64,000 nucleotides of DNA, from assembly GCA_977016875.1 (NCBI GenBank), contig CDRNST010000265.1:248001-312000 (forward strand), given 5' to 3'. Below are positions 804 to 55,529 of the stretch, piece after piece; the stretch's first letter is position 1; each line of letters opens with the position of its first letter. Source of the stretch: Pavona decussata. Taxonomy: Eukaryota. A model generated the notes under the pieces. That model saw nothing but the letters and a program-made list of their open reading frames with translations, made no database searches and was not told where the DNA came from. A program made the position numbers and the translations under genes.

Positions 804-882
804 ATGTCTGACGAGCGCCATCTCCCCCTGCGCATGTGCTTTGTGTTATTTACAGTTGTGCTGCTAATCCGAGGCAATGAAG
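804..882 (+). CDS. Exon 1, signal peptide ([26 protein letters not shown])
   Basis: ATG at 804, hydrophobic core, phase-1 donor GAAG|gtacc. Same exon in copy 2. An acceptor-like ttttccttcag at 783-793 hints at an upstream UTR exon. Confidence 0.8.
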
Positions 883-3800
883 GTACCTTGAAAAATCAAT
901 TTACTTTAATTTTAACATTTTCCTAGTATATTTCGTTATTTCTTTCCCTTAATAATAGCTAAAAGAGAAACAAAGATTTGGGGGTGGGGCGGAAGTAGAT
1001 CGCTGTGGAAGTAACCAGATAAAACAGCATTTTCAGAGATAGTTTAACTTAATAAAACTTGAACTAGTTTAAGGTCTTTAAACCTTTTTTGAAAGCAAAT
1101 ATCGCACGTTTTACAATTAATAGTCACCTGCATAGCTTTCTTGACGTCTTGAATTAATTTGAACAGCAATTATTGGTTGGGTGCTCATGGATGGACTATA
1201 CAATCAACCCAAATACTTTTGTGGATTAATTTACTGACGACAAAAAAGTCTTCAGTCTTAGTCAACCTTTGTCTATTGTCTTCTTTCATAGCCGCCAGTT
1301 TTAAGGCCGGAAAAGACAATGTAACGACATCCAGTCCAGGACTGTTCGCTTGCAAGAAAATATCGTTTTCTCAACCTTTCAATGGCGGAAAGAAAGTGAA
1401 AGTGTTTGCCTCATTTGATCATTCGGTGGAAAGAAGCCCAACTCGTGGTAACGGTGCTGCTATTTGGGTTGAATCAGAAGATCAAAATCAATTCACCACC
1501 TGTGTTTCTGAATACGGTGAAGGTTCTAATGGAACAGCGGAGGTGAATTGGATCGCTGTCCAATCCGTTCCTTCTAGGGCTCAAATAGGAACTGCTGACT
1601 TGGATCCTTGGACTACTGGGACACAATGCAAAAGGATCGACTTCCCACAGGTTAGCATAGTTGGTATTTCTATTAGTATTTGTTTCATGGAATTTCGATT
1701 TGCACAAAAGAAGTAGAAAAACCTCTTCCCGCTGGATTCATTTGTAATCAGAGTTCTAGGTTTAAAATAGGATCTTAAAAGTAACGGCCTTTCGTTTCTG
1801 GTATCAACTTAAGCCAGCTTTGGAAAAAGAAACCGTCTGTTAATTTAGACAATTTACTTTCCTTGCGAAAAGTTAGACGGACAGTATTTTCAACCTTGTT
1901 TGCCAAAATAATTTCTCGATTACAGGACGTCAATTTCAAAGTAAGCAGTCGATACCTTTTTTGTCAAAATTGATTTGTCCTCTCAATTATCGATATTTTG
2001 TGTAACTAATGCTTTAGAAATTGAAAAAAAAAAAGCTTACGCTCGTTATAAACTTAATTAACCATTGCAGTTGGTTTATCGAGGTTCACGTAAGAAGTTC
2101 TAAATCATAGTTTTTGTTTTTCTCACTTTTTTGAGCCATAAGCACCCAGACAGAGGTCCAAAAGTTCATGAGCTACTAATCTATTTTTCAGACAATGCTG
2201 GCACAAAATCAATGNNNNNNNNNNNNNNNNNNNNNNNNNNNNNNNNNNNNNNNNNNNNNNNNNNNNNNNNNNNNNNNNNNNNNNNNNNNNNNNNNNNNNN
2301 NNNNNNNNNNNNNNNNNNNNNNNNNNNNNNNNNNNNNNNNNNNNNNNNNNNNNNNNNNNNNNNNNNNNNNNNNNNNNNNNNNNNNNNNNGATTAGGTGGG
2401 TGCATGAGTGAGTGAGGGGGTAAGTGGGTGCGTGGGTGGTTTATTCGATTAGTGAGTAACTGAGTGAATAATGCGCGCGTTTCTGCGTGCGTGCGCGAGT
2501 CAGTTGGGAGTGGGTGGGTGGGTGGGAGGTTAGTGGGTAAAAGTGTGAGTGTGTGATTGAGTGAGTGTGTGATTGAGAGTGAATGAGTGACTGAGTGAGT
2601 GGGTGAGTGAGTGAGTGAGTGAGTGAGTGAGTGAGTGAGTGAGTGAGTGAGTGAGTGAGTGAGTGAGTGAGTGAGTGAGTGAGTGAGTTAGCGAGTAAGT
2701 GGTTAGGTGGGTGCATGAGTGAGTGAGGGGGTGAGTGGGTGCGTGGGTGGTTTATTCGATTAGTGAGTAAGTGAGTGAATAATGCGCGCGTTTCTGCGTG
2801 CGTGCGCGAGTCAGTGGTGAGTGGGTGGGTGGGTGGGTGGGAGGTGAGTGGGTAAAAGTGTGAGTGTGTGATTGAGGGTTTAAGTGAGTCTGTGAGTGAG
2901 TGAGTTGCTGAGTGGGAGAANNNNNNNNNNNNNNNNNNNNNNNNNNNNNNNNNNNNNNNNNNNNNNNNNNNNNNNNNNNNNNNNNNNNNNNNNNNNNNNN
3001 NNNNNNNNNNNNNNNNNNNNNNNNNNNNNNNNNNNNNNNNNNNNNNNNNNNNNNNNNNNNNNNNNNNNNNNNNNNNNNNNNNNNNNNNNNNNNNNNNNNN
3101 NNNNNNNNNNNNNNNNNNNNNNNNNNNNNNNNNNNNNNNNNNNNNGGGTATCTTTTATGCGCCTTAATCTCTAAAGGGAGAGATTGGTCTAGTTACAATA
3201 AAGATTTCGATGTTAACTACAATAACGAATTAACTAATACAAGGAGATTACAGCATAGAATAATTGATATGAAAAGAGTGAAACAATTCATTATTTACAT
3301 GCTGATTCGAGGAACTTGTCTCTCTTCTGGAACATTAAATTAGTATATTTACCTACTGTTTTAGTAGTATTTTCCTTGTCTAGAGTAAGTGGATAGCTAA
3401 TTTTGTCTTTATTACTTAAGTTGGCGATAACATGATTATTTTTGGAAATGAGAGAATGGAGTTCATGTCTAATTTTATCATATTCTTGGAAATACAACAA
3501 GAAAGCCGTTTGTCCTCAATGAAATTTCTTTTGCATATTAAGCAGGTTCTATCTACTACCGAGATTAATGCCCCTTTTTTTCTTATTTCCCAGTTTGTAT
3601 ACTCAGTGAATGAAGCACTAGTTGCAATTTCGAATTCGTAATACTAATTCTATGTGCTGGGTTTCTGATGGTCTTTAGAGAGTCCTCTAGTTGGTTGTCA
3701 TTTTTAAGTGTTTGTGAGTAGCTTTTTCTCTAGAGTTTTCAGAACTGTTACTGCGGATCTTCGGCTAATTTTGAAAATAGCTTTTTCCTTAGTTCCTTTA

Positions 3801-6800
3801 TAAGGGAGGAACGAGCATTCTTGATATGTTGTCGATTTACTATATTGCTTGTGGAGGGCATTCGTATTAACTCTCACTATTTAATTCATCAAAAAATCTT
3901 GCGTAACAAAAAGCTTCATTAAAGAGATGATTGTTTGTTTTATGTAGTAGGCTTTGCCAGTAACTAAAAATTAAAGCCTTTATGTCTATAGTTAAGAGGC
4001 TCCGTCCAAGTTCTACCCTACAGGCTATGTTTTATGTTTTATTTGTACCAGGGTGTATTTATTGTTTCTTTTCAGAACTTAATATGGACTTGTTCAACAG
4101 TCCTTTTGTCAAAATAAGTCTTATATGATAATAATTCAGGCTCAGCAATTTCGCGTTCATATAATAGTATAAGTTTGACAAGAGCATCACAAAGTTCATT
4201 CCTAATTGTAATTTTGGTCGTATCGGAATTAGGGAACGACCGTTTTATTATTGTCGTTATTAGTCCTCCCAAAAACCTTTCCTTATTCTTGTATGTTTGA
4301 TATCATAGCTCAGTCTGCCCTCTTACTTAGCAGTAAAAGGCATTCTTTCTCAGTTTTGTCATCCTGGTCCGTCTAGATTAGCTTTGCTACCTGCGGCGCC
4401 CAGAAAGTGTCCATGTAAATTTAAGCAAACACCAAATAAACTTGAAAGTTTAAGTTGAAGATAGAACTTTGTAAACTTTTTTACTAATGCGAATTCGTGG
4501 GATATAACGACCAGATCAAGTCCTTCTATCCCTACTATGTTTGTCTTTCTCTCAAAGATATGTTTGGCTACATTGTCCTCATTTTGGTATAACATTATTA
4601 AATTTAATTATATTTTGAATTTAGGTTGTCTTTTCTCTTCTGAAACATTAAATATGTGTATTTGCCTACTATATTTGAAGTGGTTTCATTTTCTAGGGTA
4701 AGTTAATACCGTGTCTTATCGTCATCATTTATGTTTTTAAAAATCATCGTGTGTTGAAACGAGAGAATGCAGCTCATTTCTAATGTTATTGAGTGAGTGA
4801 GTGAGTGAGTGAGTGAGTGAGTGAGTGAGTGAGTGAGTGAGTGAGGAGGTTGAACTTATATATTAAATGGTGATAACAAGTACTGTTCGATTATTTTCAA
4901 TTTCGTCTTGTTTTATATTTGATTTTTTAGCGTTTTATGACTCCACCAACTGTTCTGGTGACCCCTTCTCACAAGTTAGCCAAAAAACCCCAGGATGCCA
5001 TGGCTCTGTGGATTCAACATCCCAGTGTGGACAGTTTCACTCTTTGTGCCCGTGAAACCAAGCTTTTTGATGGCCTACACCAAAATATAAAAGTTGTGAG
5101 TAATTACTTTTTATTATTACTGTTTTTCAAGGTATTGCTTTTTTCTTCTGTAGCGTAATTCTTTGTCTTATAAAGAAATAAAATCGCCCTTTTAAAGGGT
5201 GAGTTGGACTGGAATAGAAAGTGCCCGAACTTGTCTCTGAACATTCGTGCCTATTGGAGTGAACGTAGCAATAAGCACACTCTCTGACTTTTCCTAAAAT
5301 TAATCTAAGGACACCTTGGTTTTAAAACCTTTATTGTGAAATGATTCTCTTAGAAATAAATCGTAAACGATTTTGACAACGATGGTGCTTCCTCCTCTAA
5401 AATGTCTTTGTCCTTTGATTATAAAACATTGCGTTTATCGTACTTTTCTCTTTTTACATTTGGTTAGTTTTATCAGGGGCTATAGGAAACAGGGTTTCGA
5501 CTAAATAAATATTACAGTTTATCTCAAGTAAAGTTGAAATACTCACAATGAATCAGTCTTTTGTTCTTTTCTGATCGTTGCTCGCCATTTATGTCAAGTA
5601 GAATAGCCCTAATAACCCTGCGTTTGATTCAGAAATATCCTGCAAGCGTTCGTCAAGTCTTGGTAACCGCGCGTCGAACTCCAATCCCAGGCGCGGGCAC
5701 TAAGCGCGCAAGCGTTAACCCTTATTGCCTGATTTCATACCGTGGGGGTCTGGGTACGAGTCTGTGTATTATGGGTTATGGGACTCAACACCCACATAGC
5801 CGGAAAGAGCACACCGCACTTTACAACATTTCCAAGTTTGGTGTTAATCACGCTAATATTAGGAAAGATACAGCCATTCAAAAACTCCAAATTTTACTAA
5901 GAAATGTATGGAACGCCGGACGTGTGTCCGGCGTTCCATACATTTCTTAGTAAATTTTTAAGTTTTTGAATGGCTGTATCTCGCCTAATATTAGCTTGAT
6001 TGACACCAAACTTGAGGATGTTGTAAAGTTCGACGTGCTCTTTCCGGCTATGTGGGTGTTGAGTCCCATAACCCATAATACACAGACTCGTACCCAGACC
6101 CCCACGGTATGAAATCAGGCAATGGGTTAACACTCGCGTGCTTAGCGCCTGCGCCTTAGATTTGATTAGGACGCTCGGTTACCAAGACTTAACGAATGCT
6201 TGCGATATAGTTCTGAATCATAATGGCGCGTTGTTAGGGCTATTCTAAAAGAAATAAATAAGGAGAAAAAACCAGTAAAGACAATAGACTACTTCATTGT
6301 GAGTAATTCAACTTTACTTGAGATAAAATGTAATCTTTACTTAGTCGAAACCCATGTTTCCTATAGCCCATGGTTTCATTTATTGTTAGGTCAATTCTTG
6401 GATGTATTGATGATGTGTTGGAAAACCTAAAAAATCCAAATGAGATAAAGAATCCTGAAAGGCGGCACTTAAGATTATTGGCTTAAATTCCAGGCTATAT
6501 CAGTTCATTGTCCCACTTTGAAAACGTAAATTAAGAGACAGTTTGAGACTTAATGCATTAATCTACATAACAAAAGGCGTGGGCTAAGAGGAGACAGGTA
6601 AAAGGAGAATAAGAAAGTACAAACAACAGCAGAGGTGAAAAGAAACACCAATGTAGCATGTTTAAACTTGTGTAGTAGCCTGTCAGACAGTCTGGTCAAA
6701 TACCCAAAAGATCTTAAAAACTGAAATAAGAGGGTTGTATTCGATTAAAGAAAAGTTTGACTTGAGCATTAATTTATTTTGCTTTCTTGCAGAACTGGTT

Positions 6801-9800
6801 AGCATTTACTAACCTCAATTTGGACAATTTTACCCTGACGAACAGTCTGTTGTTTGCAAACATTACTCCACCATCTCACAGAGACAACTATGCTTTCTGT
6901 CAGGTAAGGAAAGTAAATAAGCAAAATTACTAACTTTCATCATAGTCCTATACGTTTATGCATATTTATTTATTTATTTATTTATTTATTTGTTTTCTTT
7001 TAAAGAAAATCAACTTTACAGACCCATTCTTTGTTCCTCCTGTGGTAGTGGTGACGCCTAAACGCAGTTATAACAACTCGCATCTGTCTCCTGGATCTGG
7101 ATGTGACGCAATTGTCAGCTGGGTTGAGGTATTTTCTTTAACTTTGCTATGTTTATCGTTGATCCAATAAGCAATTGGTTTAGAGAAAGTAAGTAAGCAC
7201 GATTTTACATTATCTCCTGAGAATACAAACAAGTCCATATATCTAATATCCACTTGCTTCAAATTTTATCACAAAACTGGATGTTTTTGTTGTTTTATGC
7301 TGGATTTTGTGGCACTGTGAGAAGAAATCCACCCTTACTGGCCTCTTAACTTACTCAAGCAGTCTAGGGTCTCGGTTTGAAGTATGTTCGAAAAATATAA
7401 CTCGTCCACAAATTTTCGACATCTAAAGCCTAGAACGGGACGAAATTTTGCCTTATTTTAAAACTAGTTTTCGAACAAGGTCTTTCTTGGATCTCTTAGT
7501 AAGTAGCTTTTGGTCGGCAGGCTTAAAAATTAATCAAGATGGTTTCATAAAGCAAAGAAACTCAACCAAGATATAAAAATGTGAACTTTAAAGTGGCAAA
7601 AGAGATGCAACTCTAGCACTGATATAGTCTGCCAAGAACGAAGTCTTTTAGCTCCATCTCGATAGGCCACATAACTAAGAGAAATGAAAGACATATACAA
7701 AACGTATCCTTTGACATATAGAAAAAAAATAACAAAATAATTCCCGGTTCATGCGTCGAACTTTACATGAGCCGAACCTAATCATTTGGTTGGGCCCATG
7801 TAAATTTCGACGTATGAATCAGTTAGGATCGACAGATTTATATGTGGGTCGACCCGCCGTTCTATTCGAATGCGCCATTTGAATAGAACGGCAAAAGTTC
7901 GACTTCGATTCATACGTCGAACTTTACATGTGCAAAGGACTTCATTCTGCACAAAATGGCGGGAAAAGAGGAATGTGCTTGTTCTTCTTGTTTCTAAACA
8001 AATAAATATACTTGTCTGAGATGCGAAAGATTTTAAAAGAATCTATTCTTGATGTGCAAACGCACTTCAAACCGACCGAAACTGTCCAATACAGGCTATA
8101 TCGAAGGTGAAGCCTTAATACTTCTCAGAACAAAATGTTCAAAAACATCATTTGAAGAGAACATTACTTTATTCAAACAGAGATTACGCCACAGAGGTTA
8201 CCTCGATAACCTTTAGTTATAGATAAAACTCTTTCAGAAGTCAATTTCCTCAAACGAATGTCGGCACTACAAAACAAACAAAACACGCGCACAAACATTT
8301 TGCCTTTTGTTACGGATTATCGCCCTTATTTGCCCAACATAAAGAAATTGAGATGAGTAAATGACACTTGATAGAAAATCAGCCTCTGCTAAGAGAGATC
8401 TACAAAGACCCTTCCCACTTTCGTACAGAAAAGGAAGATCTTTGAAAGACGTACTCGTGAGAGCAAATTAGCTTTGGAGGTCATATTCTCCCTATCTCGT
8501 CAAATAGGAGCCGTGTTTGGCCTGTCTTCATTATTTTACCAAACAAGGTCTTCCATGTCAGAATTCATCTTTCCCGCCATTTTGAATCTTGTTGAGTAAA
8601 AAAAAACAGCCGCTGACCGCGAAAATCTATTTTAACACTTTAGCTTTAATTAAGTTCGACTTCAGTTAGGTTCGACGTCTGAATCAACTGCCGAACTTAA
8701 TTATTTGGGTCGACCTTAATAGATATTAATAGATATTAGGTTCGGCTCATGTAAAGTTCGACGCAGGGCAGTACATAGCAGGATGGGGGGGGGGGGGGGG
8801 GGGGGCAGGGCAGAGGGGGCAGCTGCCCCCGCCAGGAAAACTATTTTTTTTTTGTAACAGTGTTTCAATTTGTAGAGCTTATTCTTGTAGGTTGTTCCAA
8901 AATCTCAAGAAAATCTTATTGAGTGGAAAAAATATTCCTTCAATGAGAATTTCAAATAATTATGTTGGAAAATCTTTCAAGCCAAAAGCCAATACGAGTT
9001 TTCTTATGAAAATAACGATTTTGTAATTTGGGCTGCCTGTGGTGTAGAATTTGGTGTGCAAATAATGACTGGTCAACAAGCCTATGCCACTCCCTGGCGT
9101 GTGCCTTTTTTTTTTTTTAATCTAGCTTACACGAGTATGTTTTAATTGGTTTTAAAAGCCTGCGCGACTCCCATAAGTATTTTGGGTTTGAAGGATTTGA
9201 TAGAGCGTTGGATTTAACCATCGTATGATCAACATCACAGGTCATTTGTGCCTGATAAGTTTTGATTTTCCTTTTTTGAATTCTCTTCATTTTAAATATG
9301 ACTTCTTATTCTGTGTGTTCAACGACGGTGTTTTTATGCCACATAGGGCATTTCAGCTGGGTTTGGTTTGGCTTGTTTAGTTTGAACCGAACATTGCCTC
9401 TCATCTAATGGTAAATTTTAAACACAGTCGATGCACTGCAGCTGTAATTAAACGGAGAAAATCACTTAACTCCCACAATTCAAACGCACTATAACAGTTG
9501 AGCGAAGCACTTGCAAAAAGACAGTCGTGAATTAAGTACAATTTACGCCTTTTATGACTGTGACACGTTGCATAGCTCGATAACACGCTACAACGATTAC
9601 TAGAGAAACAAAGAAACAAATAGCCGTGCCAAGAAACACAACACCTTACATTATGACAAAAACTAATAGCCGGGCCTGGTATTACAACTACAAAATGAAG
9701 TTTATTACAAATTCAATCGGCAAGCAATGATTAATTCCTGTTCTAACATTTCACAAATCTCAACAAGAAGGCCGTTGAAACTATCAAGCACTTAAACAAG

Positions 9801-15800: not shown

Positions 15801-18800
15801 TATGTAAAGTTGAGTTTTGAGCACCATTCAGGATGACGCACATTTTTGCCACCACTACAGTCCTTGCATTCGCACTTCCCATACCCACATCCCAGCAGTG
15901 TCATAACCCGATAATACAGCCCTTTCTTTGCAGAGTACGTCCTAAGCTATGCATTAACCGAGGAGGACGAGTTTGGTTGTTTGTATAAAAGTTAAGGATA
16001 CTTCCTGGGTTCGCGGGTGTCCTTTAGAAAAAAATTCGTACGCGCGCAAGTTTTAATAAACCTCTAACAAACTATATATCATTATAAAGCTTAATAAATG
16101 TAGTTTCCTATAAAAAAATATAATTTAGCGATTTTTCCCTTTTTTAAGTGCCAGGAGCCAGTAGAACCTCGAATCAACCGATGGTCGTTCCATTGAATTA
16201 ATCGGTTATCGAACGCCGCGCGAAGAACGAAATCGCTGCACAGTGTTATTCACAAGGTATCAATCAACAAAAAGGTGTCAGGCTTTTTCGAAATTCTGAT
16301 TGGTTATTTAGATATCCACGTCTAAAGTTTGAGTAGCAAAAAATATTTGAGGCGTGTTGCGTAAACAGTCGCCACGGGAAAAATATTTTGAAAATCAAAA
16401 TTCCCTGACACCTTTTTGTTTGTCGTTATTCCTCAAATCGTCTGGCCAAATTTCACGACAATCCGTCAAAACTACATACCCTATTAATTCGTTCAAAGTC
16501 GATAAACTCTGCCAAAATTCAAGTGCGAGTTTTCGCTTGATAAAGGTTTGCAAGAAAAACAAGCCTCCACAGGAGATTATGACACCTCATTACGTGGCGA
16601 GCCAATCGAGCAACAGGACCCCATGGCGTCAACAACAACAGCACAGAATTTCGCGGAAAAAGTATCGCGTTGCAGACACGTTTTAGACTCCGCTGTTGTG
16701 ATTGAGCGAGATGGGGAAAGTGGCGAAAGGAAAACGTAAAAATCAACCAGGAAAACGGGGTAAAACCAAGGCTAACGAAACCGAAAGCGCGTCAGCGGAG
16801 AGTTTGAGGAGTGCACTGATATCAGAGATGAAATCTTTTGGGTAGGTTGTTCGTTTTGATTGCTTGTAATGTAATTTACGCTTCAAGCTAAAGCGATTAT
16901 TCATTTCGTATCAAAGGAAATGTATAATGAAAGAAAATCGCATTTTTACTGTGACTTAGGTACGATGGTGATTTCTTCGTAAGAAATCTTCAAGATAGCG
17001 TGGAGCGAAGCAAAAAGCGAGAGAAAGGGCCACGCAGAACGCGCTATCTCCAGTATTACACGTGGGCTCATGCGCTTCTGGTGAGTTCTATTTCATCGGT
17101 CTAATTCTTGCTGATTTTATGCCAATGTTTCATTAGAAACGCGCAGTAAAACGTTATTTGGATTTTTCTCGCTGCAGAAGAAAGAAATCGGCCCAGAGGA
17201 TGCAGAATATGATATTTGATACTTTCACAGGACGCTTGCAAAGTTACCCTGCAGGACTTTTGCACGGCAATCGACCTAAGTGTATTTGATCCAATAACAG
17301 TGGATAAATTTGAAGGCCGCTGCTCCAGTTCTTCGTGATCACCTTCGACAGAACCGTCAACGTCGACTACAGTTTCTTGGTCGAACCAAGAGCCTTTGTT
17401 GCTCTCGCCAAGATCACGTGTCCGATCTTCGCTGAAACCTATCTTTCCCTTTTTCTTAGGCCCTGGCTTCTTCCAGGATTTTATCCTCAGGCTCTTTTCG
17501 TTTTTTGATGACTTTTCCATTTGGGAAGCGCGAAGAATATAAAATTCAAAGTGAGAAATTTTCTGCAGGCCAAATGTAAACAAAATATGCTTATTTCTGA
17601 AATAAGAGCTCTCGGATGAAGCGTTTTGCCGCGAAAATTCCTCTGGGGCGTCTCGCACTAAGAAGATTATGACACCTTTTTTATTTATTTACTTTTATAT
17701 GGAAATACGTTTTCCTAAATATCTCGCGCTTTTTTAAATATTTTTCAAATTTTTTTTTCAGTAAATGTTAGATAAGATCCCCAAAATCTATTTGGTCGAA
17801 AAAAATGTTTTTTCACTTTTTCATCCTATCGAACCCAGGAAGTACCCTTAAGATTACCCTATTTCAAATAAATAATGACTAGCCAAGGTAATTAATAACT
17901 AACACGGCTGAATCATAACAGAATTGGTTGCCTGGTAACAGAAAAATTTCCTAAGGAGAAATTACCACTGAATATTTTTTTCTTCATGTCCTCTCTTCAT
18001 ACAGACATATGCCGACCAGGCTGGAGTTACTTTAATGGTTACTGCTACTTCACAAGCCGCGCATGCGCCTCATGGCTGACCGCTGAATCAAACTGTTCAA
18101 CAATGCACTCAGATCTAGTGACCGTTCACAATCAAGAGGAAAATGTCTACATCCAGCATGGCAATAACGGCGAACGAAGTTGGATTGGTTTGAATGACAG
18201 AAGTGTTGATGGATCGTTTGTTTGGACCAACAAAGAAGTGAGCAGCTTTAGGTTCTGGGCGCCGAGACAACCAAATAACTGGAGAAATGAAGACTGTGTG
18301 CACACTTTGGGTGCAAAGCATGGTTATACTTGGAATGATGTGTCTTGCGATAATTGCAACAACTTTACTTGTTTTACAGGTACAGGGAGAACAACTTTAT
18401 TAGGCATTTCTTCTAAGTAGCATCGTGGAGATAAATATATTTGATAGCGTTTTTTAAAACTTTAGATAGGTAAAACAAAACATCCATCTGGAAACGAATA
18501 ATTGCCTCAAATGAGCACTTCTCAGAGTGTTAATGATTTGCATTAAAGGAGTTAACGTTAAGAAGGAGAAATCAGCCATTTATCTGCGAATAATTGCCGC
18601 CACGGATCATATCAGCTGTCACATAAATTTTTAATTTTTTTTCAGTGACTTTATCGCGTAGCCCAACCGCTCACGCAATATAAACAGCATACAACCCACA
18701 ATGCCTTTATCCGCTCTGACAAAGGACTAACAGTAGACGTCAGTATCAAATTACTTTATCAACTCTGTTTACAAAACCAAACATTCGTTTAAGCTTCCGT

Positions 18801-21800
18801 CCGACCACAATCTCATTATAAACCAGCCCCCTTATCCAGTGAACTCTGGCCTTCCATTCCAAATATTTCCCGGTGAATTGCTAGAACAGAAAAGGTCATG
18901 GAGTTTTGTTTCGTTTGCACAACATAAAAAGAAAGTTATGAACCCTGAAAGTAGGCCCTGGCAGATTCTACCCCCCACCTGTCTGTATGGAGGTTAATGT
19001 TGTTGTCTTTGGTTATATCTTTCCAGACCTAGACGAATGTACTACAAACTCCTTTGATTGTGACTCCAATGCTGCTTGTCAAAATACCAAGGGCTCGTAC
19101 ACCTGTGGTTGTAAATCTGGCTATACAGGAAATGGCAAGATTTGCAATGGTAATAAATTGATAATGATGGCACAGAAAAATTGTAAAATGTAATTGTCGT
19201 TCACATCCACATGGAACTAGAATGGTGAGAATGCTTTCACCGAGAAGATGACAACTACGTCGGTAAAATAACGAGGACGAGGCTTAAAATAATTATAACC
19301 GAGTAATGCTGGCGATCAAGAGGATGATCATATAAACAAAAAGATGTACAGTGAAAGCGTGGAAGTTGTATCAGTCATATGATATAGCACACAATTGTGA
19401 TATTGAGTCGTACACGTAGTAGACTAGTGTTATTCCAGATCATTTTGGCAGCAAGTAACAGGGACTACTAGAAATTCTAAGTTTTTTACATGTGAATAAT
19501 CCAATTGATTGAGTGTTTTAATCAACAGCAAGAACAAAAAGAGGCGAAAATAAAACAAAAAAAAAACAAAAAAAAAAAAAACGAGGCCCTTAGAGACTTT
19601 CCCATACAGAAGAAAAGAACTTGTCTAGTGCAGTTTACGACAGTTTTCATATGCAACGTTTTCTCTCATTACGCTTTCATAGATATTGATGAATGTGTCA
19701 CCAACTCCCACAGCTGCAGTATTAATGCTTCGTGCAGCAATACCGACGGATCGTACACATGTGCATGTAAATCTGGATTTTCAGGCGATGGAAAGACTTG
19801 TATTGGTAAGCTACTTTAATTTGCACTTTACTTATTTTTGGTATTTAATTTCTTTTTATAATTGAACCTGCGTGCATGGGTGTAAAAATAGTGGGAGGAA
19901 TATGTACTTAAATTACAGCAACTCAAAGTAACCTCGCTGCATAGTACACAAGAAATGGAAGATAAGATTGTTTGTATATTAGCTGTGCACGCGTATTTTA
20001 TTAACTTATTTTTCAGGTGCTTCGTGTAAATTGTCCAAAGAGCAGAGTAGGATATCCTGCATAAAATTGTGCATAAGGACAAATGTTTTCGGGGACAAGT
20101 AATTTTGAAGTTAACAGGGTCCTCCAAACATTACGCGAACTTTCCATACATTAATTATGTGTTCTATTTCCCAAACAACAACAGCAGCAGCAACAGCGAC
20201 AATAACAACGAAAGCAAGAACAGTGAGAAAAATGATAAAAATTGATGCCGTAGTGCAAAAAAAAAAAAAAAAGCGGAGGAATTTTAGAACGATTTAACGA
20301 GAGTACAAATTTCGTATGAATTAACTAAAATCATTGAGACTTTTCCTCATTACATTTTTGTAGATATCGATGAGTGTTCTACCAACTCTCATAGCTGTGG
20401 TGTTAACGCCGTGTGCAGTAACACCTATGGATCGTACACCTGTGCATGTAATTCTGGATATTCGGGCGACGGAAAAACATGTACTGGTAAGCTACTTCTA
20501 GTCTGATCTACTATACTAAGGGAGTCGGGTATCGTTTACATTTCCATAACCCAACCTTTCTTAATCTCTCGCTAAACGAAAGCTTCAAGACAAAATGGCC
20601 TGTAAGCAGGCCCGTAAACACTTAACCAGAGCCTTGGTGGCGGTCATAAACTAATCTGGGAGCAAATTTCAGAAAGCTACATTAAATTATTTATTAACTA
20701 CTTTATTTCTTTCTTTGCTACATATGCTGTTACTCACGTGTTTCCTCAAAAGTAAGATTACTGAACAATAACAACGGCTAAAGTAAGACAGCGTTTACAT
20801 GAACGCGGTTTCAAATCGTCACGGTTTCATGCCGTTGAAACCGCATGGAAAAAGATACGGTTTCAAAGCGTTTACACGGTGCCAATCTCACTGTTTTCAA
20901 GTGCTTACGTTATGCCGATCTCGTTCCCAAGCACTCATTATTGAGGAAGGGGATCTGGGTTCGATAATTACGCCGTTTTGGTTTCTTTTTGCCAACACAC
21001 AGGTCACCAAAGCGTGATATACGAGTTTGTATGTGTGACGTGGATCTCTCCCTTGTGAGGCACGATTTAAAAGGGGACTGTACAAAACCCTTCCCGCAAA
21101 CCCACTAAGTAATACAAGACTAAGTAATACAACAAATTTAATTAATTTAGTATACATAAACGCTTAGTAAACACAATAAACGGTAACGTAAAAAAAAAAA
21201 AAACTTTCTTAACCTAATTAATTATCTTAAACTAAATTACTTATTTCAGTTCAGTTCAGTCCTTCCTTGTTCTTGAAGTCTTCTCCAGGCACAAACAAAC
21301 TGCTACTTCAACCACTCGCATAAACAAACCGCACCAACAACCGTTCACACAAACCTCTCCTTCTTGTCTTCTGGCACCTTTTCTCTTCTTTGTTCCCGTC
21401 TTGTTTGACTCCGCCGCACTCAGTTTAAATTTCTATGCACACGCCTTGAAATCTTGTTCACTCGCCGCCGCGGACAAAAGGGTTTATGTCAGGGAAAACA
21501 CGGCCGGCTCCTGCCAATGGCTCTTGACAGTGACTTGAACAATTTCGCCTTCGACCTTGCAATACAAACTTTTTTGCTTCTCCTTACTTCTTCTTACTTC
21601 TCTGTCCTTTTTCTCCTTCCAAGAATAACAACCAACTACACAACAACAACCTTGACTTCTATTTAAATACTGTACACAATTACGACATTACAAAGAAGAT
21701 TCCAGAAAACGGTAACTACAAGATGTACAATAAATGCTGATTACACAATAAGATACAAAATATACGGTAACGGGAATAATAATAGTTAGTTAGATTACAT

Positions 21801-24800
21801 TGAAATTTACAATACTACACACCATTTTCTAAGACAATAACTACTAATATACTAGTGACATTTTTTGACTAATAAAAATACGACGAATAAGACTACAAAT
21901 AATTAACAATAAACCTAACGAATTTAGATAATGAAAAAGAAACGACTAAATTTCTACATGCAAACACGAAACATGAAAATGCAAACATGAAATGAAAACA
22001 ACGAAAACATGAATAATATGAATTTTGTGACAGTATGGCGTTAACATTAAATCGAAAAAATAGACAACAATATTCCCACAAAACCCCCCAAAAATATGTA
22101 ATTAAGTCTGAAAAAGCTTACCCGGTGTGTTTTGCTGTGTTTTCAAGGCTTCTCAGTGCATCCAAACGCCGTTTTGAGCGGTTAATCTCTCAGCGGCTGG
22201 TCCACTTGCATCACTGTATTATGTTATGAAAGGCTGGAAACTTGAAGTCGAATTTCAATGTAATTTGACCCAGGCCTTAGATGAAAACAAAGTTGATTTC
22301 AAATCGGGCGCCATTTTTGCCGCGGAGCGAGCGTGTCCCTGGAATGCTTTGTCATGACAAACTCACGGTCAAACCTAGTCATGAGTACTAAAGTGTGCTC
22401 AACCTTTCATTAACATAATACAATGGTCTACGTGGACCAGCCGCTGAGAGATAAACCTCTCAAAACGGCGTTTGGAAGCACTGAGAAGCCTAGAAAACAC
22501 AGCAAAACACACCGGGTAAGCTTTTTCAGACTTAATTATATTTTTGTGGGTTTTGTGGGAATATTGTTGTCTAATTTTCGATTTAATTTTAACGCCATAC
22601 AAACTCTTATATCACGCTTTGGTGACTTGTGGTCAAAATGGCAAAAAATAGCGCTCAATTCACATGGACGCATGGACTGACAACGAAGTAGAACTCCTGT
22701 TGAAAGTAGCTAATTTAATTTCTATTAAACCAGCGCTGTACTCCATGTGAGGTTCCCCATTTTGAATCTACGCGCCGAAGTGAGATTCCAACCGGCGACC
22801 TCGGTTTCGGTAACGGTCTCGACCGGTGTCGTGTAAACGAAAACAATGTGGTTAAAATAGAAACCGCGTTCGTGTAAAGGCTGCCTAAAAGGCACTTGAT
22901 TATATGTCAGTAATGAGCGTCTTGATTTAATTATTTTTATCCACAGATATCGACGAGTGTGCTAGCGGCGTTCACGGCTGCCACAATCTTGGTTCATGTA
23001 CGAACACCTTGGGATCTTACAGTTGTTCGTGCAACCATCCTTTTGTAGGAAGTGGAACAAACTGCAGGCACTCTGCGTCAGGTGAGTCACAATGATCTCA
23101 TATAATTTATTTATATACTTGAATCTTGCAAACAAACAATCACACACACGAAGTTCAAGAACAACGTGGAGAAGAGAGGTCCCGTTACTCGTTTTCATTT
23201 TGCGTTGGGTTTCTCCTGTACCACCAGAGATATTGTATGTTACTATAAACTAAAACAGTCAATAGTGCATTGGCGCGCTCTGTCTGGCTACTGGAACTTG
23301 GTATAGCAAGTGCTATTTACCTCCAAAAAACTCGTGAACTTCGCGTTTATTAAGAGAAAAAATGGTTTCACAGTCTCCTACCAATAAAGGAAAAAAACGA
23401 AGAAATATAACAAATAAACGAAGAAGCTGTTCCCGCTAACACAAACAAGTCGGCAAAATTTGGTTGGCAGATTTTATAGGTTATGCTTGATCCATTTAAG
23501 CCCACATTTATCGATGAAACCTGTGAAAAAGCTTTTGGTTACAAAATTGTAATGGTTGACAAAAATCAATGATTTGATAATCATCATTTTCGTACCATAT
23601 TATCGCACTGTTTTAGTATATAGTAATACAACTATTCACCTCAGTGGCGGAGGCCAGTGGTACCACTAGGCACCTCCACCTCGCTCAATAGTTGTTAGTT
23701 ATTTAATGTAAAAAAGGCAGCTAAAACACGCAGATATTATGTGACTGCATTACTGATAAACGTAATTAGAACGTGCTGATTCTAAGCTCTTGTTTATGTA
23801 GACAGTTAACAAAGAAAGGATTATAATAATAATTATAATCATAATATTCATAATGATAAAGAAAACTACATGAACAAGTAAATTATGGTTGAACTGAATG
23901 GCAGAATGATAGTTTCGAAAATTTAATTAGTTTTCTAGAAAGCAAAATGCTTTGAAGACTGAAAGAAGCGCAGGCAATGTACAAAACATTTCAAATATTC
24001 CCAAAGCGTGGGCTCAACACTCAACTCTCAATTATAAGGGCCCACACAAGTTAAGTCTTCTGAGTGATAGTTTGAAATTTAAAATATAAGGAATTGTTTC
24101 TGTAACGAAATATTCAAATCAACTTTACAATAATGCCACGAATGTTAACATTTAAGTTAAATAAAAATCATTTTAAATTTACTACGGCCATTGCGTATTT
24201 TAAATCACATTGGTGGTTAGAATGCTTTTACGCTATCCACTACTGTAAGCACTCGACAAGCAATAAACAATCAACAAGCAAACAAATAAACAGAAACGTA
24301 CAAGAAACGAAAAAATACCTCTAATTGCTTGATGTTATCCACATTGTTTAACACAATGGACTCCGGTAAGTGTACTCTAAAATATCTCAATTAGACATTT
24401 TAAACCTTTAATAATCGTTAACTCATAACACGGTTTTGCAAGTGTGCGATTTTTAGGCGTGTGTGTCTTTGAGGAAGGGAGGCTATCTAGGTTCCTCAAA
24501 AGACAAAATACACATCTTTTCTTCGTATTTTTATCTTTCAATAAAATACGTAAGGCCACCTGGTTAAAATTTTTAGCCCGGTTCTGATCTCGCGTTGTTC
24601 ATGCGTCGTACCAGCACGACCCTGCAGAACACCGGAAGTGGAAATTCAGAGTAAAATCACGCAAACCAGAAATAAAAGCTGCAGGAAACATTTGTTTTAG
24701 TCTCGAAATTGTGCGCGGTGACCTAGTATGCCACCTCAAATAGAAATTTTTAGGAGAAATTTATCTAGTAGAAATTTTTGTTTGAGAAAAAAAAATGCCT

Positions 24801-25705
24801 TTTTGAAATAACACAAGATCTATTACATACCAGCAACTGAGTTACAAAGCTGTTTATAGTTTGTCCACATGATCATTAGCAATTTTTTGTAATCCTTCAT
24901 CATTTCAAAAACACTACAACAATGAAAAAACCCTTACAACAGGCGTCCTTAAGTGACAAAATCACCGATGCGAGGTTTTTCGTTTGAGGTGCCGAAAAAG
25001 TACCTGCATAAAACCGTCGAATAAAATGTAAAAAAAACAAACAAAACAACAACAACAACAACAACAATTGTCACAGGCCCATTTATTTACTTTTCGTTAG
25101 ACACGATCTTGTTTAATGCTTGCGAGTGACCATACGTTCAGCAAAGTGTACGGTTTTGTGAGTATTCAACGCCACAAAAAGACGATGGTGGAACAGTGCG
25201 TTTTGCATAAATTGTAATGAAGATGATCATCCTTTTTAGCTATGCTATTCTCATAATGATAAATTCCTGGTAAAAAGTAATTAGATATTCATATTTGAAT
25301 ATGCCTTCTTGTTTCAACTCTCTGACCTTCTTCTTTTCCTCAGAATGCCAAAACTATCAAAGTTTGAACAGTGCTGATAGGAAGATAACCTACACCACTT
25401 TTCATGGTTATTGTGACAGTTCAATTAGTCAGAGATGGTATCGATTTGAAGGAGCTGCTGGCACAAGAATGCCTACCTCGTGTACTCCTGGTGTGAGGTG
25501 TAGCACTCACGCAACCAGCTGGCTGACCAATGGACATCCATCGGTTGCTGATGGTGAGGTTACAAGACGTGTGTGCTTCAGCTATAGTGGATACTGTTGC
25601 TATAGTTCAATTTCTTCCATAAAAGTGAGAAATTGTGGTTCCTACTATGTCTACTACCTAATCCCTATTGGTGCTTGCTATTATCGCTACTGTGGTACTG
25701 ACTAA
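804..25705 (+). CDS. Secreted multi-lectin mosaic protein, copy 1 (18 exons, 1085 aa): SP-(H-lectin-like)x3-FOLN/Kazal-(H-lectin-like)x3-CTLD-cbEGFx4-UMOD/GP2 D10C
   Basis: Exons 804-882, 1292-1650, 4931-5095, 6793-6903, 7006-7128, 10315-10411, 11052-11270, 12446-12822, 13524-13691, 14216-14326, 14507-14623, 15175-15265, 18005-18379, 19027-19149, 19683-19805, 20364-20486, 22947-23081, 25344-25705. All introns GT-AG, phases compatible, total 3258 nt with no internal stop. Exons 1-7 are conserved in copy 2. Confidence 0.88.
1292..1650 (+). CDS. Exon 2, H-type-lectin-like repeat 1 and start of repeat 2
   Basis: ttcatag| ... CCACAG|gttag; [27 protein letters not shown]. Confidence 0.9.
2215..3145. 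repeat. Complex (GAGT)n/(GGGT)n microsatellite with ~0.3-kb higher-order unit, partly N
   Basis: Pure GAGT run at ~2600-2688. The block starting ttaggtgggtgcatgagtgag is repeated at ~2392 and ~2703. Paralogous region 56913-57818. Confidence 0.9.
3146..4790 (-). mobile_element. Degenerate 5'-truncated non-LTR retrotransposon fragments (RT C-terminal region; RTE-X/L2-like, clade tentative)
   Basis: Minus-strand decayed motifs [40 protein letters not shown]...IED...Y..IR. A second copy of the C-terminal tail lies at ~4610-4790. Paralogue at ~57819-59469. Confidence 0.75.
4791..4845. repeat. (GAGT)n microsatellite
   Basis: Direct observation; shorter in copy 2 (59470-59499). Confidence 0.95.
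4931..5095 (+). CDS. Exon 3, H-lectin-like repeat 2
   Basis: ttttag|CGTTTTATG ... AAAGTT|gtgagt; [26 protein letters not shown]. Confidence 0.9.
5477..6369. mobile_element. Outer foldback/MITE (long imperfect palindrome)
   Basis: gggctataggaaaca.gggtttcgactaa... matches reverse complement of ...ttagtcgaaacccatgtttcctatagccc. Uninterrupted form in copy 2 at ~60132-60625. Confidence 0.85.
5726..6121. mobile_element. Inner 396-bp near-perfect palindromic MITE with AT duplication
   Basis: TGCCTGATTTCATACCGTGGGGG...CCCCCACGGTATGAAATCAGGCA, flanked by AT at 5724-25 and 6122-23. Absent from copy 2 (aacccttATgagtt). Confidence 0.92.
6793..6903 (+). CDS. Exon 4
   Basis: ttgcag|AACTGG ... TGTCAG|gtaagg; NWLAFTN..NYAFCQ. 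111 nt, same size as paralogous exon 10. Confidence 0.88.
7006..7128 (+). CDS. Exon 5, H-lectin-like repeat 3
   Basis: taaag|AAAATC ... GTTGAG|gtatt; [20 protein letters not shown]. Confidence 0.88.
8022..8526 (+). mobile_element. Decayed Penelope-like retroelement 3' fragment
   Basis: Frameshifted motifs [75 protein letters not shown]. Confidence 0.75.
8764..9994. mobile_element. CAGGG...CCCTG non-autonomous DNA element nested in the right TIR of 7741-10013
   Basis: cagggcagtacatag / ctaggtacgaccctg imperfect TIR. It splits the host TIR between gttcgacg and tatgaaccggg. Degenerate flanks tcgacg/ccaacg. Confidence 0.7.
10315..10411 (+). CDS. Exon 6, end of repeat 3
   Basis: ttttag|CACACA ... 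GGAG|gtaagt; [20 protein letters not shown]. Confidence 0.88.
11052..11270 (+). CDS. Exon 7, follistatin-N/Kazal-type module
   Basis: [36 protein letters not shown]; phase 1-1 exon. Confidence 0.92.
12446..12822 (+). CDS. Exon 8, H-lectin-like repeat 4 and start of repeat 5
   Basis: aacag|GATTT ... CCTCA|gtaagt; paralogous to exon 2 (SWVE..FTACV..VDW..WWTGTTC..F). Confidence 0.9.
13301..13349 (+). ncRNA. Candidate minimal hammerhead-ribozyme-like motif (Penelope-associated type), probably degenerate
   Basis: CTGAAGA-T-GATAT-agtatc-ATATC-GAAA-TATA: core boxes with a 5-bp stem II. Stem I pairing is imperfect. Confidence 0.3.
13524..13691 (+). CDS. Exon 9, repeat 5
   Basis: ctacag|GGTAAG ... 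TACGTG|gtaagc; [36 protein letters not shown]. Confidence 0.88.
14216..14326 (+). CDS. Exon 10
   Basis: tctag|AGCTGG ... TGCAAG|gtcagt; SWLAFSS..NNAFCK. Confidence 0.88.
14507..14623 (+). CDS. Exon 11, repeat 6
   Basis: catag|GACATA ... GTGGAG|gtaggt; [21 protein letters not shown]. Confidence 0.88.
15175..15265 (+). CDS. Exon 12, end of repeat 6
   Basis: tcacag|TACATC ... TCTG|gtaaga; [20 protein letters not shown]. Confidence 0.88.
15996..17847. mobile_element. Kolobok-like internally deleted DNA transposon
   Basis: TTAA|GGATACTTCCTGGGTTCG ... CGAACCCAGGAAGTACCC|TTAA (18-bp TIR, 1 mismatch; TTAA TSD; RR termini). Lys-rich minus-strand ORF remnant at ~17101-17520. Confidence 0.8.
18005..18379 (+). 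CDS. Exon 13, C-type lectin domain
   Basis: [28 protein letters not shown]; phase 1-1. Confidence 0.93.
19027..19149 (+). CDS. Exon 14, calcium-binding EGF 1
   Basis: DLDEC..C..C.NT.GSY.C.C..GY.G.G..C; 123 nt, phase 1-1. Confidence 0.93.
19683..19805 (+). CDS. Exon 15, calcium-binding EGF 2
   Basis: [41 protein letters not shown]. Confidence 0.93.
20364..20486 (+). CDS. Exon 16, calcium-binding EGF 3 (not in ORF track)
   Basis: [41 protein letters not shown]; tag| and |gtaagc. Confidence 0.92.
20996..22631. mobile_element. CAC...GTG MITE with ~230-bp TIRs (Transib-like, tentative)
   Basis: Left arm 20998-21033 plus 22038-~22233 is the reverse complement of ~22403-22631. Flanks gccaa/gtcaa (5 bp, 1 mismatch). 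Confidence 0.7.
21034..22032. mobile_element. Solo LTR (999 bp), 5-bp TSD GTATG
   Basis: GTATG|TGTGAC...GTGACA|GTATG. The opposite TIR arm of the host MITE shows the empty site (aacgccatacaaactc). Confidence 0.85.
22947..23081 (+). CDS. Exon 17, calcium-binding EGF 4 (not in ORF track)
   Basis: [45 protein letters not shown]; cacag| and |gtgagt. Confidence 0.92.
25344..25705 (+). CDS. Exon 18, uromodulin/GP2/OIT3-type D10C (D8C) domain and stop
   Basis: EC..Y..L..R..CD..WYRF.G.AGT.MP..C..C.TH...WL..HP..G.V.R.VCF..CC..I.VRNC..YYVY.L..C..RYC; 10 Cys; TAA at 25703-25705. Confidence 0.92.
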
Positions 25706-54700: not shown

Positions 54701-55529
54701 ATCTCTGATTCTGATTTTTAAAAATGCCGGAACAATAGGAAGTATTTCAATGAAAAAAAAAAGAAAAATGAATTGTTTGGCTTTTAATACTTATCGATAA
54801 GTATTCTAATATACGGTTACAATATTCCAAAACATATAAAGCCCTCAGTCTCATCTAACATGAATCATTAGAAATTTCACACGATGACTTTCATTGGATA
54901 TGAACGCCCTGAGTGGATGTCCAGATGTTCGTTCAATTTTAAGTTATGCCTAGCAGTTGTTCACCGCTGGGCCATGTATTTATTTTCCATCTAGCTACAT
55001 AATTCCTCTAACCGAAAGTCATTCTCCCCAAAAATGGATTTATCTAATTCCATTCTTTTCTTTTATTAAATTATAGTTTCCTTTACGGTTTATTTATTTC
55101 CACTGAAAATAATAACTTAACTATTATGTAAATAGATTACAAAACAATAATTTTTGGCCAAAGGATGATCGTTCTAAAATGGTTAATTGCTGGAATTTCG
55201 GTAAGCTAAGTGCAGTTAATAATTTCCTTCAAATAATAAAATTAAATAATGAAAAATAAAAATAAGAATAAACGAATAATTCCGATGTTGGAGGGGAAGG
55301 TGGGGAGATACCTCATCCCTCGTGAATGTCTGGGGGTTAAAGAGGCATTAAAAAAATATTAAACTGAAAGGAGCCTTTTAAATCTGACGTGTGAGGGATA
55401 CATCTTAACCGATACATAAAGGATTTCTATTAGAAAAACACTTTAAATGAGGCCAAATAAATATGATGATCACGGAAACGTGTTGCATTTAACATTGCCG
55501 CACGAAGGTTTTCCTTCAGCTGAGGCAAG

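Follow-up and report, generated by a model that had tools for sequence, protein, structure and literature searches.

The 18-exon gene on the plus strand at positions 804-25705 of the window, a 64,000 nt stretch of a Pavona decussata contig, probably encodes a secreted multi-lectin of the LePin family, belonging to a scleractinian subfamily with a uromodulin/GP2-type D10C domain at the C-terminus. Rebuilding of this gene (gene A) returned an ORF identical to that of the preliminary description, whose claim of an intact spliced ORF of 1085 aa was reproduced exactly: the coding length of 3258 nt corresponds to 1085 codons plus the stop codon TAA at 25703-25705, all introns are GT-AG, the phases are consistent, and none of the exons contains an internal stop codon. 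Frame continuity was checked from the exon lengths, and domain searches were run on single exons or on related proteins.

Exon 1 (804-882) provides the ATG at 804 and the signal peptide, comprising 26 codons and 1 nt ahead of the donor GT at 883. Exon 2 (1292-1650), which is flanked by AG and GT, entered in phase 1 and left in phase 0, encodes H-lectin repeat 1 and the first strand of repeat 2 and shares 58-70% identity with related proteins. Two assembly gaps (2215-2389 and 2921-3145) are situated within intron 2 (1651-4930). Exon 3 (4931-5095), placed by its match to related proteins and by the splice phases, encodes the middle of repeat 2. The junction of exons 2 and 3 is in phase 0 and the residues encoded by these exons are adjacent in related proteins (122|123 in P0001 and 131/133 in P0205); since the relatives are contiguous over this junction, apparently no coding sequence was lost in the gaps. 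Exon 4 (6793-6903) contains the end of repeat 2 and the start of repeat 3, which continues in exon 5 (7006-7128) as far as a WVE motif and ends in exon 6 (10315-10411), left in phase 1. Exon 7 (11052-11270) encodes a Kazal module. The second set of repeats is arranged likewise: repeat 4 and the first strand of repeat 5 are in exon 8 (12446-12822), the middle of repeat 5 in exon 9 (13524-13691), its end and the start of repeat 6 in exon 10 (14216-14326), equal in size to exon 4 with 111 nt, repeat 6 up to its WVE motif in exon 11 (14507-14623), and its end, again with phase 1 out, in exon 12 (15175-15265). Downstream follow a C-type lectin domain (CTLD) in exon 13 (18005-18379; phase 1 in and out), four cbEGF modules in exons 14 to 17 (19027-19149, 19683-19805, 20364-20486 and 22947-23081, with EGF_CA scores of 41.4, 43.8, 44.9 and 44.0 bits), and the D10C (D8C_UMOD) domain together with the stop codon in exon 18 (25344-25705).

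Judging from phase compatibility and from the relatives, exons 12 and 13 are probably joined over intron 12 (15266-18004) in one mRNA. We consider it unlikely that the locus instead consists of two genes or produces a short isoform, such that an H-lectin/Kazal part ends after exon 12, a CTLD-EGF-D10C part starts in intron 12, and the 1085 aa chain is a conceptual fusion. Intron 12 is indeed 2.7 kb long, D10C-type exons are very common in the genome outside the LePin-like arrays, and short forms that end after repeat 6 and lack CTLD and EGF modules are real in Nematostella (A7RGA2), Acropora (LOC114971082) and Porites lutea (P0229). However, the end of exon 12 and the start of exon 13 are both in phase 1 with GT and AG sites, exon 13 has neither a start codon nor a signal peptide of its own and begins with DICRPGW as in the relatives, and the intronic ORFs, including a 184-aa minus-strand ORF in intron 12, matched no Pfam family. 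Furthermore, single related proteins match all 17 coding exons downstream of exon 1 in the same order, and the whole chain is represented on the transcript-sized contigs of P0205 (4190 nt, D8C included) and P0220 (3406 nt) and in the sponge transcript P0029. The RefSeq models LOC144665201 of Oculina and LOC122961271 of Acropora millepora also display the whole architecture including D8C, and the same domain order is found in the neighbouring paralogue of gene A.

This paralogue, gene B (54761-64000, plus strand), was recognized by nucleotide identity and exon matches to gene A; its 5' half lies in the window, and the remainder, located on the contig beyond the window, follows the domain order of gene A with the D10C exon last. 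Compared to the 5' half of gene A, gene B is 85-96% identical at the nucleotide level, introns included, which indicates a recent duplication or gene conversion. According to the count of E8-type exons, the genome holds at least 104 genes of the LePin-like type, organized in tandem arrays. A stop codon was present in only 1 of the 104 E8-type exons, suggesting purifying selection over the family. With more than 100 paralogues, gene A might be weakly expressed or silent. A stronger version, that it is an untranscribed or decaying copy left intact through recent duplication, would fit its membership in a large tandem family and its resemblance to gene B that extends into the introns, but is hard to reconcile with 18 of 18 exons being open, every splice site being intact, the Cys patterns and the calcium motif of the CTLD being retained, and the signs of purifying selection across the family; we regard it as improbable.

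Beyond this genome, the core of gene A is common to more than 120 annotated anthozoan proteins, and a D8C/D10C tail is present in 26 of the 120 listed. Such tailed relatives are annotated in Porites, Acropora, Montipora, Oculina, Pocillopora and Dendronephthya (LOC114534584 in the last), some under the name "Uromodulin". The core with CTLD and EGF modules also occurs in the sponge transcript and in non-symbiotic anemones, and this speaks against the design having arisen specifically for symbiosis. A search for the contig encoding P0006, which shares 99% identity with exon 8, yielded only a 957-bp metagenome scaffold.

The six repeats with the H-lectin fold form two triplets flanking the Kazal module. 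Exons 2 and 8 are homologous to each other (E 1e-10), and the two triplets go back to a block of five exons that was duplicated long ago. Single exons of gene A scored 13-14.5 bits against Pfam H_lectin (PF09458; E 0.11 for exon 5 and 0.038 for exon 11) at a gathering cut-off of 24 bits, and these per-exon scores are below the threshold because introns split each domain. Intact relatives exceed the cut-off: in P0205, repeats 5 and 6 reached 29.0 and 27.4 bits, while repeats 2, 3 and 1 remained below with 21, 17.3 and 16.4 bits, the matches of repeats 1 and 2 being full-length, and repeat 4 gave no Pfam H_lectin match. Octocoral SLL-2 and Helix pomatia agglutinin (HPA) are H-type lectins with solved structures. 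The AlphaFold model of repeat 4 of gene A (exon 8, pLDDT 81) is a sandwich whose top five Foldseek matches in the PDB are all H-type lectins, and VIA comparison with HPA, SLL-2, HAA and discoidin I/II gave Z scores of 9.0-9.7 with whole targets covered. Concordantly, the 647-residue core model of P0205 (pLDDT 85.5, pTM 0.54) shows the H-lectin fold in repeats 1, 2, 5 and 6 (Z 8.5-9.7); Foldseek of this core was dominated by the Kazal module, and the VIA comparison recovered the H-lectin matches. The H-type-lectin-like nature given to the repeats in the preliminary description is supported by the fold of repeat 4 and by the relatives passing the Pfam cut-off.

From these models, the repeats are predicted to form the six-stranded beta-sandwich of the HPA/discoidin type that is shared by HPA (2CCV, 2CE6), SLL-2 (3WMP) and the C-terminal domains of discoidin I/II (2W94, 2VM9), although sequence identity to these solved H-type lectins is only 12-19%. 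PDB sequence searches with a repeat-4 profile and with repeats 5-6 of P0205 found no H-lectin, and the solved structures were reached by fold comparison only. Whereas the solved H-type lectins are homotrimers of single domains, gene A carries six tandem repeats per chain, and the three repeats of each triplet may imitate the H-lectin trimer within one chain. A three-chain complex prediction for repeats 4, 5 and 6 of P0205, in which the alignment was unused, scored 0.29 against a mark of 0.34 and weighs neither for nor against such trimer-like packing.

The Kazal module of exon 7 (Kazal_2, 43.3 bits) is of the 10-Cys follistatin (FS) type, consisting of a hairpin and the Kazal fold. In the P0205 model it gave Z scores of 7.7-9.1 with the FS domains of Fstl1, hevin and BM-40, and overall 7.0-9.1 with FS domains compared to 6.2-6.9 with ovomucoid-type Kazal inhibitors. 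FS-type Kazal domains are often non-inhibitory, and the initial remark that Kazal modules can inhibit proteases is not supported for this one. The 10-Cys hairpin and Kazal fold are shared with follistatin, Fstl1, SPARC/hevin and agrin, but unlike these proteins gene A has a single FS module, set between lectin triplets. It is the most conserved exon of the gene, with 76-82% identity to relatives. In the CTLD of exon 13 (Lectin_C, 60.3 bits), all five positions of the calcium site 2 motif of sugar-binding C-type lectins (here QPN...E...WND) are filled, as read from the translation. QPN is a variant of the EPN/QPD triplets, and for this reason no sugar specificity can be derived for the domain.

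Hydropathy analysis in 19-residue windows gave a single value above 1.6, located in exon 1 (KD19 1.64), which displays the n-h-c pattern of a signal peptide, while all other exons stayed at or below 0.77. Neither a TM segment nor a GPI-type tail was detected by hydropathy in any exon, and a Pfam scan of all exons gave no match to a ZP module. The last Cys is followed by 3 residues before the stop codon at 25703, and the relatives terminate at the same place. The product is thus predicted to be a secreted, non-membrane, multi-lectin mosaic protein, in line with the earlier reading of a signal peptide and no TM, GPI or ZP region.

The D10C domain was likewise correctly identified at the outset. 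Exon 18 scored 55.2 bits with D8C_UMOD and aligned end to end with residues 174-288 of human uromodulin (E 1.6e-19), with 10 of 10 Cys matched; the E value against the D10C domain of GP2 was 4.7e-18. P0205 aligns collinearly with residues 17-288 of uromodulin over its cbEGF modules and D10C (E 3e-40). The order of cbEGF modules followed by D10C is hence shared with the N-terminal arm of uromodulin and GP2 (EGF I-III and D10C; 6ZS5, 7P6R). In contrast to these proteins, gene A lacks EGF IV, the ZP polymerisation module and the GPI signal. The sequon NLT of human uromodulin (Asn275), which carries the FimH-binding high-mannose glycan, reads Y-L-I in the exon 18 alignment. With this sequon absent, the analogy to an adhesin decoy, drawn from the presence of D10C, is weak. 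The expectation that automated annotation would call such a protein uromodulin was borne out by UniRef, which labels several Porites relatives "Uromodulin".

The preliminary description knew of no characterised protein with such an architecture and named an already characterised family among the findings that would speak against it. Such a family exists: LePin of the soft coral Xenia (Xe_002591) combines H_lectin, Kazal, CLECT and EGF domains behind a signal peptide (Hu et al., Nature 2020, PMC7332420; bioRxiv 10.1101/2022.12.13.520278). LePin is secreted, forms a coat on Symbiodiniaceae and helps them to attach and be taken up, and RNAi causes a phenotype (PMC7332420; bioRxiv 10.1101/2022.12.13.520278). 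Its functional hallmarks besides the coating are expression in cells that host algae and reduced uptake upon knock-down. LePin-like proteins were defined by a signal peptide, no TM, the domains H_lectin, KAZAL, CLECT and EGF, and BLASTP homology over at least 60% of Xenia LePin (bioRxiv 10.1101/2022.12.13.520278). Gene A possesses a signal peptide and no TM segment according to hydropathy, as well as Kazal, Lectin_C and four EGF_CA domains, with H_lectin assigned from the fold of repeat 4 and the Pfam matches of the relatives, and would count as LePin-like by the domain criteria of Hu et al. 2022. Multiple H-type lectin, Kazal, C-type lectin and EGF domains occur in the same order in both proteins; a D10C tail, as found in gene A, is not mentioned for LePin in Hu et al. 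2020 and 2022.

Homology to LePin was assessed through three published 15-residue antigen peptides, Xe_002591 not being among the 325 proteins searched. The peptides map to homologous places, namely exon 11 (peptide 1), exon 4 and its counterpart exon 10 (peptide 2), and the CTLD/EGF junction of relatives, with scores of 39/85 and 39/90 on gene A exons compared to 63-72 on octocoral relatives. In a tree of the core, which included proxies of gene A (P0205, P0207 and others) in place of the gene A protein itself, these proxies grouped in a scleractinian-only clade (SH-aLRT 100), and the octocoral sequences nearest to the LePin peptides fell into a sister long-form clade. Placed through its proxies, gene A thus appears to lie outside the octocoral LePin clade, as a family member among at least 104 paralogues and not as a 1:1 orthologue.

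A main role other than glycan recognition, as protease inhibitor, as antagonist of TGF-beta ligands via the FS/Kazal module, or as structural or skeletal-matrix polymer like uromodulin, would accord with the strong conservation of that exon, its resemblance to the FS domains of follistatin, Fstl1 and SPARC, and the collinearity of the EGF-D10C arm with uromodulin, but is highly improbable given one Kazal module against seven lectin-type domains, a missing ZP module that makes uromodulin-type polymerisation impossible, and a characterised relative, LePin, that acts as an alga-binding lectin.

Recognition of microbes or symbionts, as first proposed, remains the best inference for this secreted LePin-family lectin and is now backed by an experimentally studied homologue. 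The protein would be released into the gastric cavity or the mucus, where the H-lectin repeats and the CTLD could bind algal or microbial surface glycans multivalently; by analogy to Xenia LePin coating Symbiodiniaceae, the EGF-D10C arm might present the bound particle to host cells. Considering the at least 104 tandem paralogues and a clade that is not the nearest to Xenia LePin, it is more plausible that gene A belongs to a diversified set of recognition proteins than that it is "the" lectin of symbiont uptake.

A wider reading, which we put forward tentatively as rather less than an even prospect, is that the LePin design in reef-building corals constitutes a large combinatorial recognition repertoire, in which at least 104 tandem genes would combine a conserved chassis of two H-lectin triplets, FS/Kazal, CTLD and cbEGFs with exchangeable C-terminal heads that were shuffled repeatedly (D10C, fibrinogen-like, TLD, CUB/SRCR, F5/8C, pentraxin, olfactomedin and intelectin). 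Genes A and B, both with a D10C head, would make up one module. If so, "coral LePin" would not be one gene, and the expressed paralogues may encode symbiont or microbe specificity.

Few coral proteins have been linked by experiment to the recognition and uptake of symbiotic algae; LePin is one of them, and its editing has been proposed as a means of altering symbiont choice. That this design is present in a stony coral in very many tandem copies with varied end domains, and not as a single gene, helps to explain why "the LePin gene" was not confidently identified in Oculina in a recent study, and any study of function or engineering effort in reef builders must handle the choice of paralogue. 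For the gene A locus the outcome is mainly an annotation: it should be labelled as LePin-like, the lectin being one that ends in a D10C domain, and not as a uromodulin.

The window DNA is AT-rich and animal in character, with a GC content of 0.32-0.46 and six runs of N. An 18-exon gene, here gene A, was rebuilt at 804-25705 on the forward strand from stop-free frames, boundary sequence and tblastn with related proteins. According to the splice-site reading all of its introns are GT...AG with agreeing phases, and none of the 18 exons contains a stop codon. The summed exon lengths of 3258 nt correspond to 1085 codons plus TAA, identical to the 1085-aa spliced ORF of the preliminary description; continuity of the reading frame was derived by arithmetic on exon lengths, and searches were made by single exons or related proteins. 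The related protein P0205 has the complete architecture including the D10C domain (Pfam D8C_UMOD) on a single 4190-nt contig, which is transcript-sized for its 1029 aa, and exons 2-18 of gene A (17 coding exons) all match it in the same order. Of the indirect evidence for a single mRNA encoding the gene A chain, this collinearity with one contig is the strongest at hand.

Two of the N runs (2215-2389 and 2921-3145) lie inside intron 2 (1651-4930) of gene A. Phases, contiguity in relatives and repeat register gave no sign of a missing exon in these gaps: the end of exon 2 and the start of exon 3 are both in phase 0, the residues encoded by the two exons adjoin in tblastn alignments with the Porites relative P0001 (122|123) and with P0205 (131/133), and the register runs unbroken from ‘...CKRIDFPQ’ to ‘RFMTPP...’, split as between exons 8 and 9. 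The intron 2 gaps of gene A and of its downstream tandem paralogue, gene B, occupy equivalent positions, and GC skew is strong (0.35-0.40) around both, at 2001-4000 and 56001-58000. Gaps and skew probably reflect a G-rich repeat that the assembler failed to resolve.

Exons 2-6 and 8-12 encode three repeats each, described beforehand as H-type-lectin-like. Exon 2 is homologous to exon 8 (E 1e-10, 31% identity), and the exon sizes of the two blocks match (359/165/111/123/97 nt and 377/168/111/117/91 nt) with identical phases, which confirms duplication of a five-exon block. Single exons of gene A reached only E 0.04-0.1 with Pfam H_lectin because introns split every domain, while the profile passes its cut-off of 24 bits in intact relatives. 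When P0205 was scanned one repeat at a time, repeats 5 (29.0 bits) and 6 (27.4 bits) scored above this cut-off; repeats 2 (21 bits) and 1 (16.4 bits) stayed below it with the whole profile aligned, repeat 3 (17.3 bits) did so with just the first half aligned, and repeat 4 had no match in this repeat-wise scan. Exon 8 of gene A, encoding repeat 4, was folded with 90 homologous segments (pLDDT 81), and the five top Foldseek matches of the model comprised Helix pomatia agglutinin, SLL-2 and Helix aspersa agglutinin. VIA-align placed it at Z 9.0-9.7 to discoidin I/II, HAA, HPA and SLL-2, covering the entire targets; apart from these, only phage tailspike and pyocin-fibre domains reached a Z of about 7 or higher, and the following rows had Z <6. 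In a model of the P0205 core (647 residues, pLDDT 85.5, pTM 0.54), repeats 1, 2, 5 and 6 match H-lectins with Z 8.5-9.7. Thus, the models directly support an H-lectin-like fold for at least five of the six repeats (repeat 4 in gene A; repeats 1, 2, 5 and 6 in P0205), and paralogy with repeat 6 supports the same predicted fold for repeat 3. Together with the Pfam matches in relatives, these models bear out the earlier reading of the repeats.

The remaining domains were called by Pfam scans of one exon at a time: Kazal_2 in the Kazal exon (43.3 bits), Lectin_C in exon 13 (60.3 bits), EGF_CA in four exons (41-45 bits) and D8C_UMOD in the last exon (55.2 bits). The Kazal exon, exon 7, has 10 Cys, and the Kazal module of the P0205 model finds its top matches in the follistatin-type FS domains of Fstl1, hevin and BM-40 (Z 7.7-9.1). 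In exon 13, where the motif ends in ...WND, the C-type lectin calcium/sugar site is filled at all five positions, with QPN as a variant triplet. Over its whole length the last exon aligns with human uromodulin 174-288 (E 1.6e-19) and the D10C of GP2 (E 4.7e-18), and ten of ten Cys are matched. Since uromodulin 17-288 aligns collinearly with the EGFs and D10C of P0205 (E 3e-40), the C-terminal third of the protein corresponds to the uromodulin N-terminal arm, but without the ZP module. The gene A protein ends 3 residues beyond its last Cys, as do its relatives, and outside exon 1 there is no hydrophobic stretch, all Kyte-Doolittle 19-residue windows being at or below 0.77; there is thus no TM segment or GPI-type tail, in agreement with the previously noted lack of TM, GPI and ZP regions. 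The D10C identity given in the preliminary description thus stands, but its bacterial-adhesin decoy analogy is weak, since Y-L-I stands in place of the sequon to which human uromodulin attaches its FimH-binding glycan, and the ZP module is absent. The expectation that automated annotation would yield ‘uromodulin-like’ proved correct, as UniRef names several Porites members ‘Uromodulin’.

The assertion that no characterised protein has this architecture is refuted by LePin, a secreted lectin of the soft coral Xenia that marks alga-hosting cells (Hu et al. 2020, PMC7332420; Hu et al. 2022, bioRxiv 10.1101/2022.12.13.520278). LePin antibody stains the mouth surface and free algae, and LePin-like proteins of symbiotic anthozoans are defined by KAZAL, EGF, CLECT and H_lectin domains (Hu et al., bioRxiv 10.1101/2022.12.13.520278), all four of which are present in gene A. 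Sequence comparison with LePin covered three published 15-residue peptides, which map to homologous places in the family, namely the repeat-6 loop in exon 11, the ends of exons 4 and 10 (‘...NYAFCQ/K’) and, in relatives only, the CTLD/EGF junction; their strongest matches are octocoral relatives. Unlike LePin as described, gene A has a D10C tail; such tails of LePin-like proteins are already annotated in databases, yet we found no discussion of them in the LePin papers. Gene A is a new, D10C-tailed member of the known LePin-like family. By analogy with LePin and known H-type and C-type lectins, the protein would be secreted, bind surface glycans of algae or microbes multivalently and bridge them to host cells. 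Of this picture, the domain content, the missing anchor and the intact calcium motif are observed features. The microbe/symbiont-recognition function suggested earlier is a reasonable guess.

With a profile built on exons 2 and 8, 449 representatives were retrieved from a large library, and a word search with P0001 yielded more than 120 anthozoan proteins that share the core. By our count of the 120 proteins listed, the C-terminal domain is D8C_UMOD in 26 (Porites, Acropora millepora, Montipora, Oculina, Pocillopora and the octocoral Dendronephthya), fibrinogen-like in 18, TLD in 18 and CUB and/or SRCR in 12, with a few each of F5/8C, pentraxin, olfactomedin and Ig. The six-repeat-plus-Kazal core occurs in Nematostella (A7RGA2) and, with additional CTLDs and EGFs, in a transcript of the sponge Oscarella pearsei (P0029), and is thus old. 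Long forms with CTLD and EGFs are also found in the non-symbiotic anemones Nematostella vectensis (P0310, LOC5502715; P0311, LOC5500783) and Actinia tenebrosa (P0246, P0269), although the most similar Nematostella lectins were reported without CTLD/EGF domains (bioRxiv 10.1101/2022.12.13.520278). Together with the sponge transcript, this implies that the architecture predates photosymbiotic anthozoans and is not limited to them.

In a maximum likelihood tree with the sponge as root, 94 cores fall into a short-form group and one long-form clade (SH-aLRT 97) with two parts. The first contains scleractinians only (SH-aLRT 100), including all their D8C-tailed proteins in the tree and those closest to gene A; the second (SH-aLRT 87) unites the octocoral sequences nearest the LePin peptides with CUB/SRCR-, FReD- and TLD-tailed groups. 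Gene A was placed by exon-level identity, its exons being 55-89% identical to the first part versus about 40-58% to the second. This indicates that gene A belongs to the family without being a 1:1 orthologue of Xenia LePin. Well-supported branches carry at least six switches of tail type, and P0205 (D8C) and P0220 (F5/8C) have 90% identical cores but different tails, which points to repeated head swapping in the family; some tail changes may be gene-model errors. Closely related cores with different tails (D8C, F5/8C, pentraxin, fibrinogen-like, TLD) were likewise seen in P0218, P0221, P0224 and others.

In the 602-Mb assembly of P. decussata, in which the window is contig C265:248001-312000, searching all six frames with the exon-8 profile gave at least 104 full-length matches (E <=1.3e-51; 150 of 304 candidates scored), one of which bears a stop. 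D10C-type exons number at least 150. Both counts come from exon matches, with about half of the candidates scored, so that the real figures are higher. The exon-8-type matches form tandem arrays, with about 30 on C123 and five on C265; contigs with exon-8-type matches or D10C-type exons, mostly in tandem arrays, also include C86, C25, C293, C388, C337 and others. As a lead, the wider pattern of a very large tandem family whose heads are swapped is more interesting than gene A alone.

The next LePin-like gene downstream is gene B (~54761-64000, continuing to ~325974 of C265); tblastn of related proteins detected no LePin-like exons between 25705 and 54761. Including the contig continuation, gene B has the order of gene A, with six H-lectin repeats, FS-Kazal, CTLD, four EGFs and D10C. 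Its first seven exons and introns are 85-96% identical to gene A at the nucleotide level, but the D10C exons share only 67% protein identity, a difference that points to gene conversion in the 5’ half or rapid tail divergence. A partial additional D10C-like fragment lies ~1.9 kb 5’ of the last exon of gene B. Gene B (at 61951-61957) lacks the segment 7741-10013 of gene A (intron 5, ~2.3 kb), which is either an insertion in gene A or a deletion in gene B, and the nearby 5474-5719 and 6124-6372 of gene A match gene B in inverted orientation.
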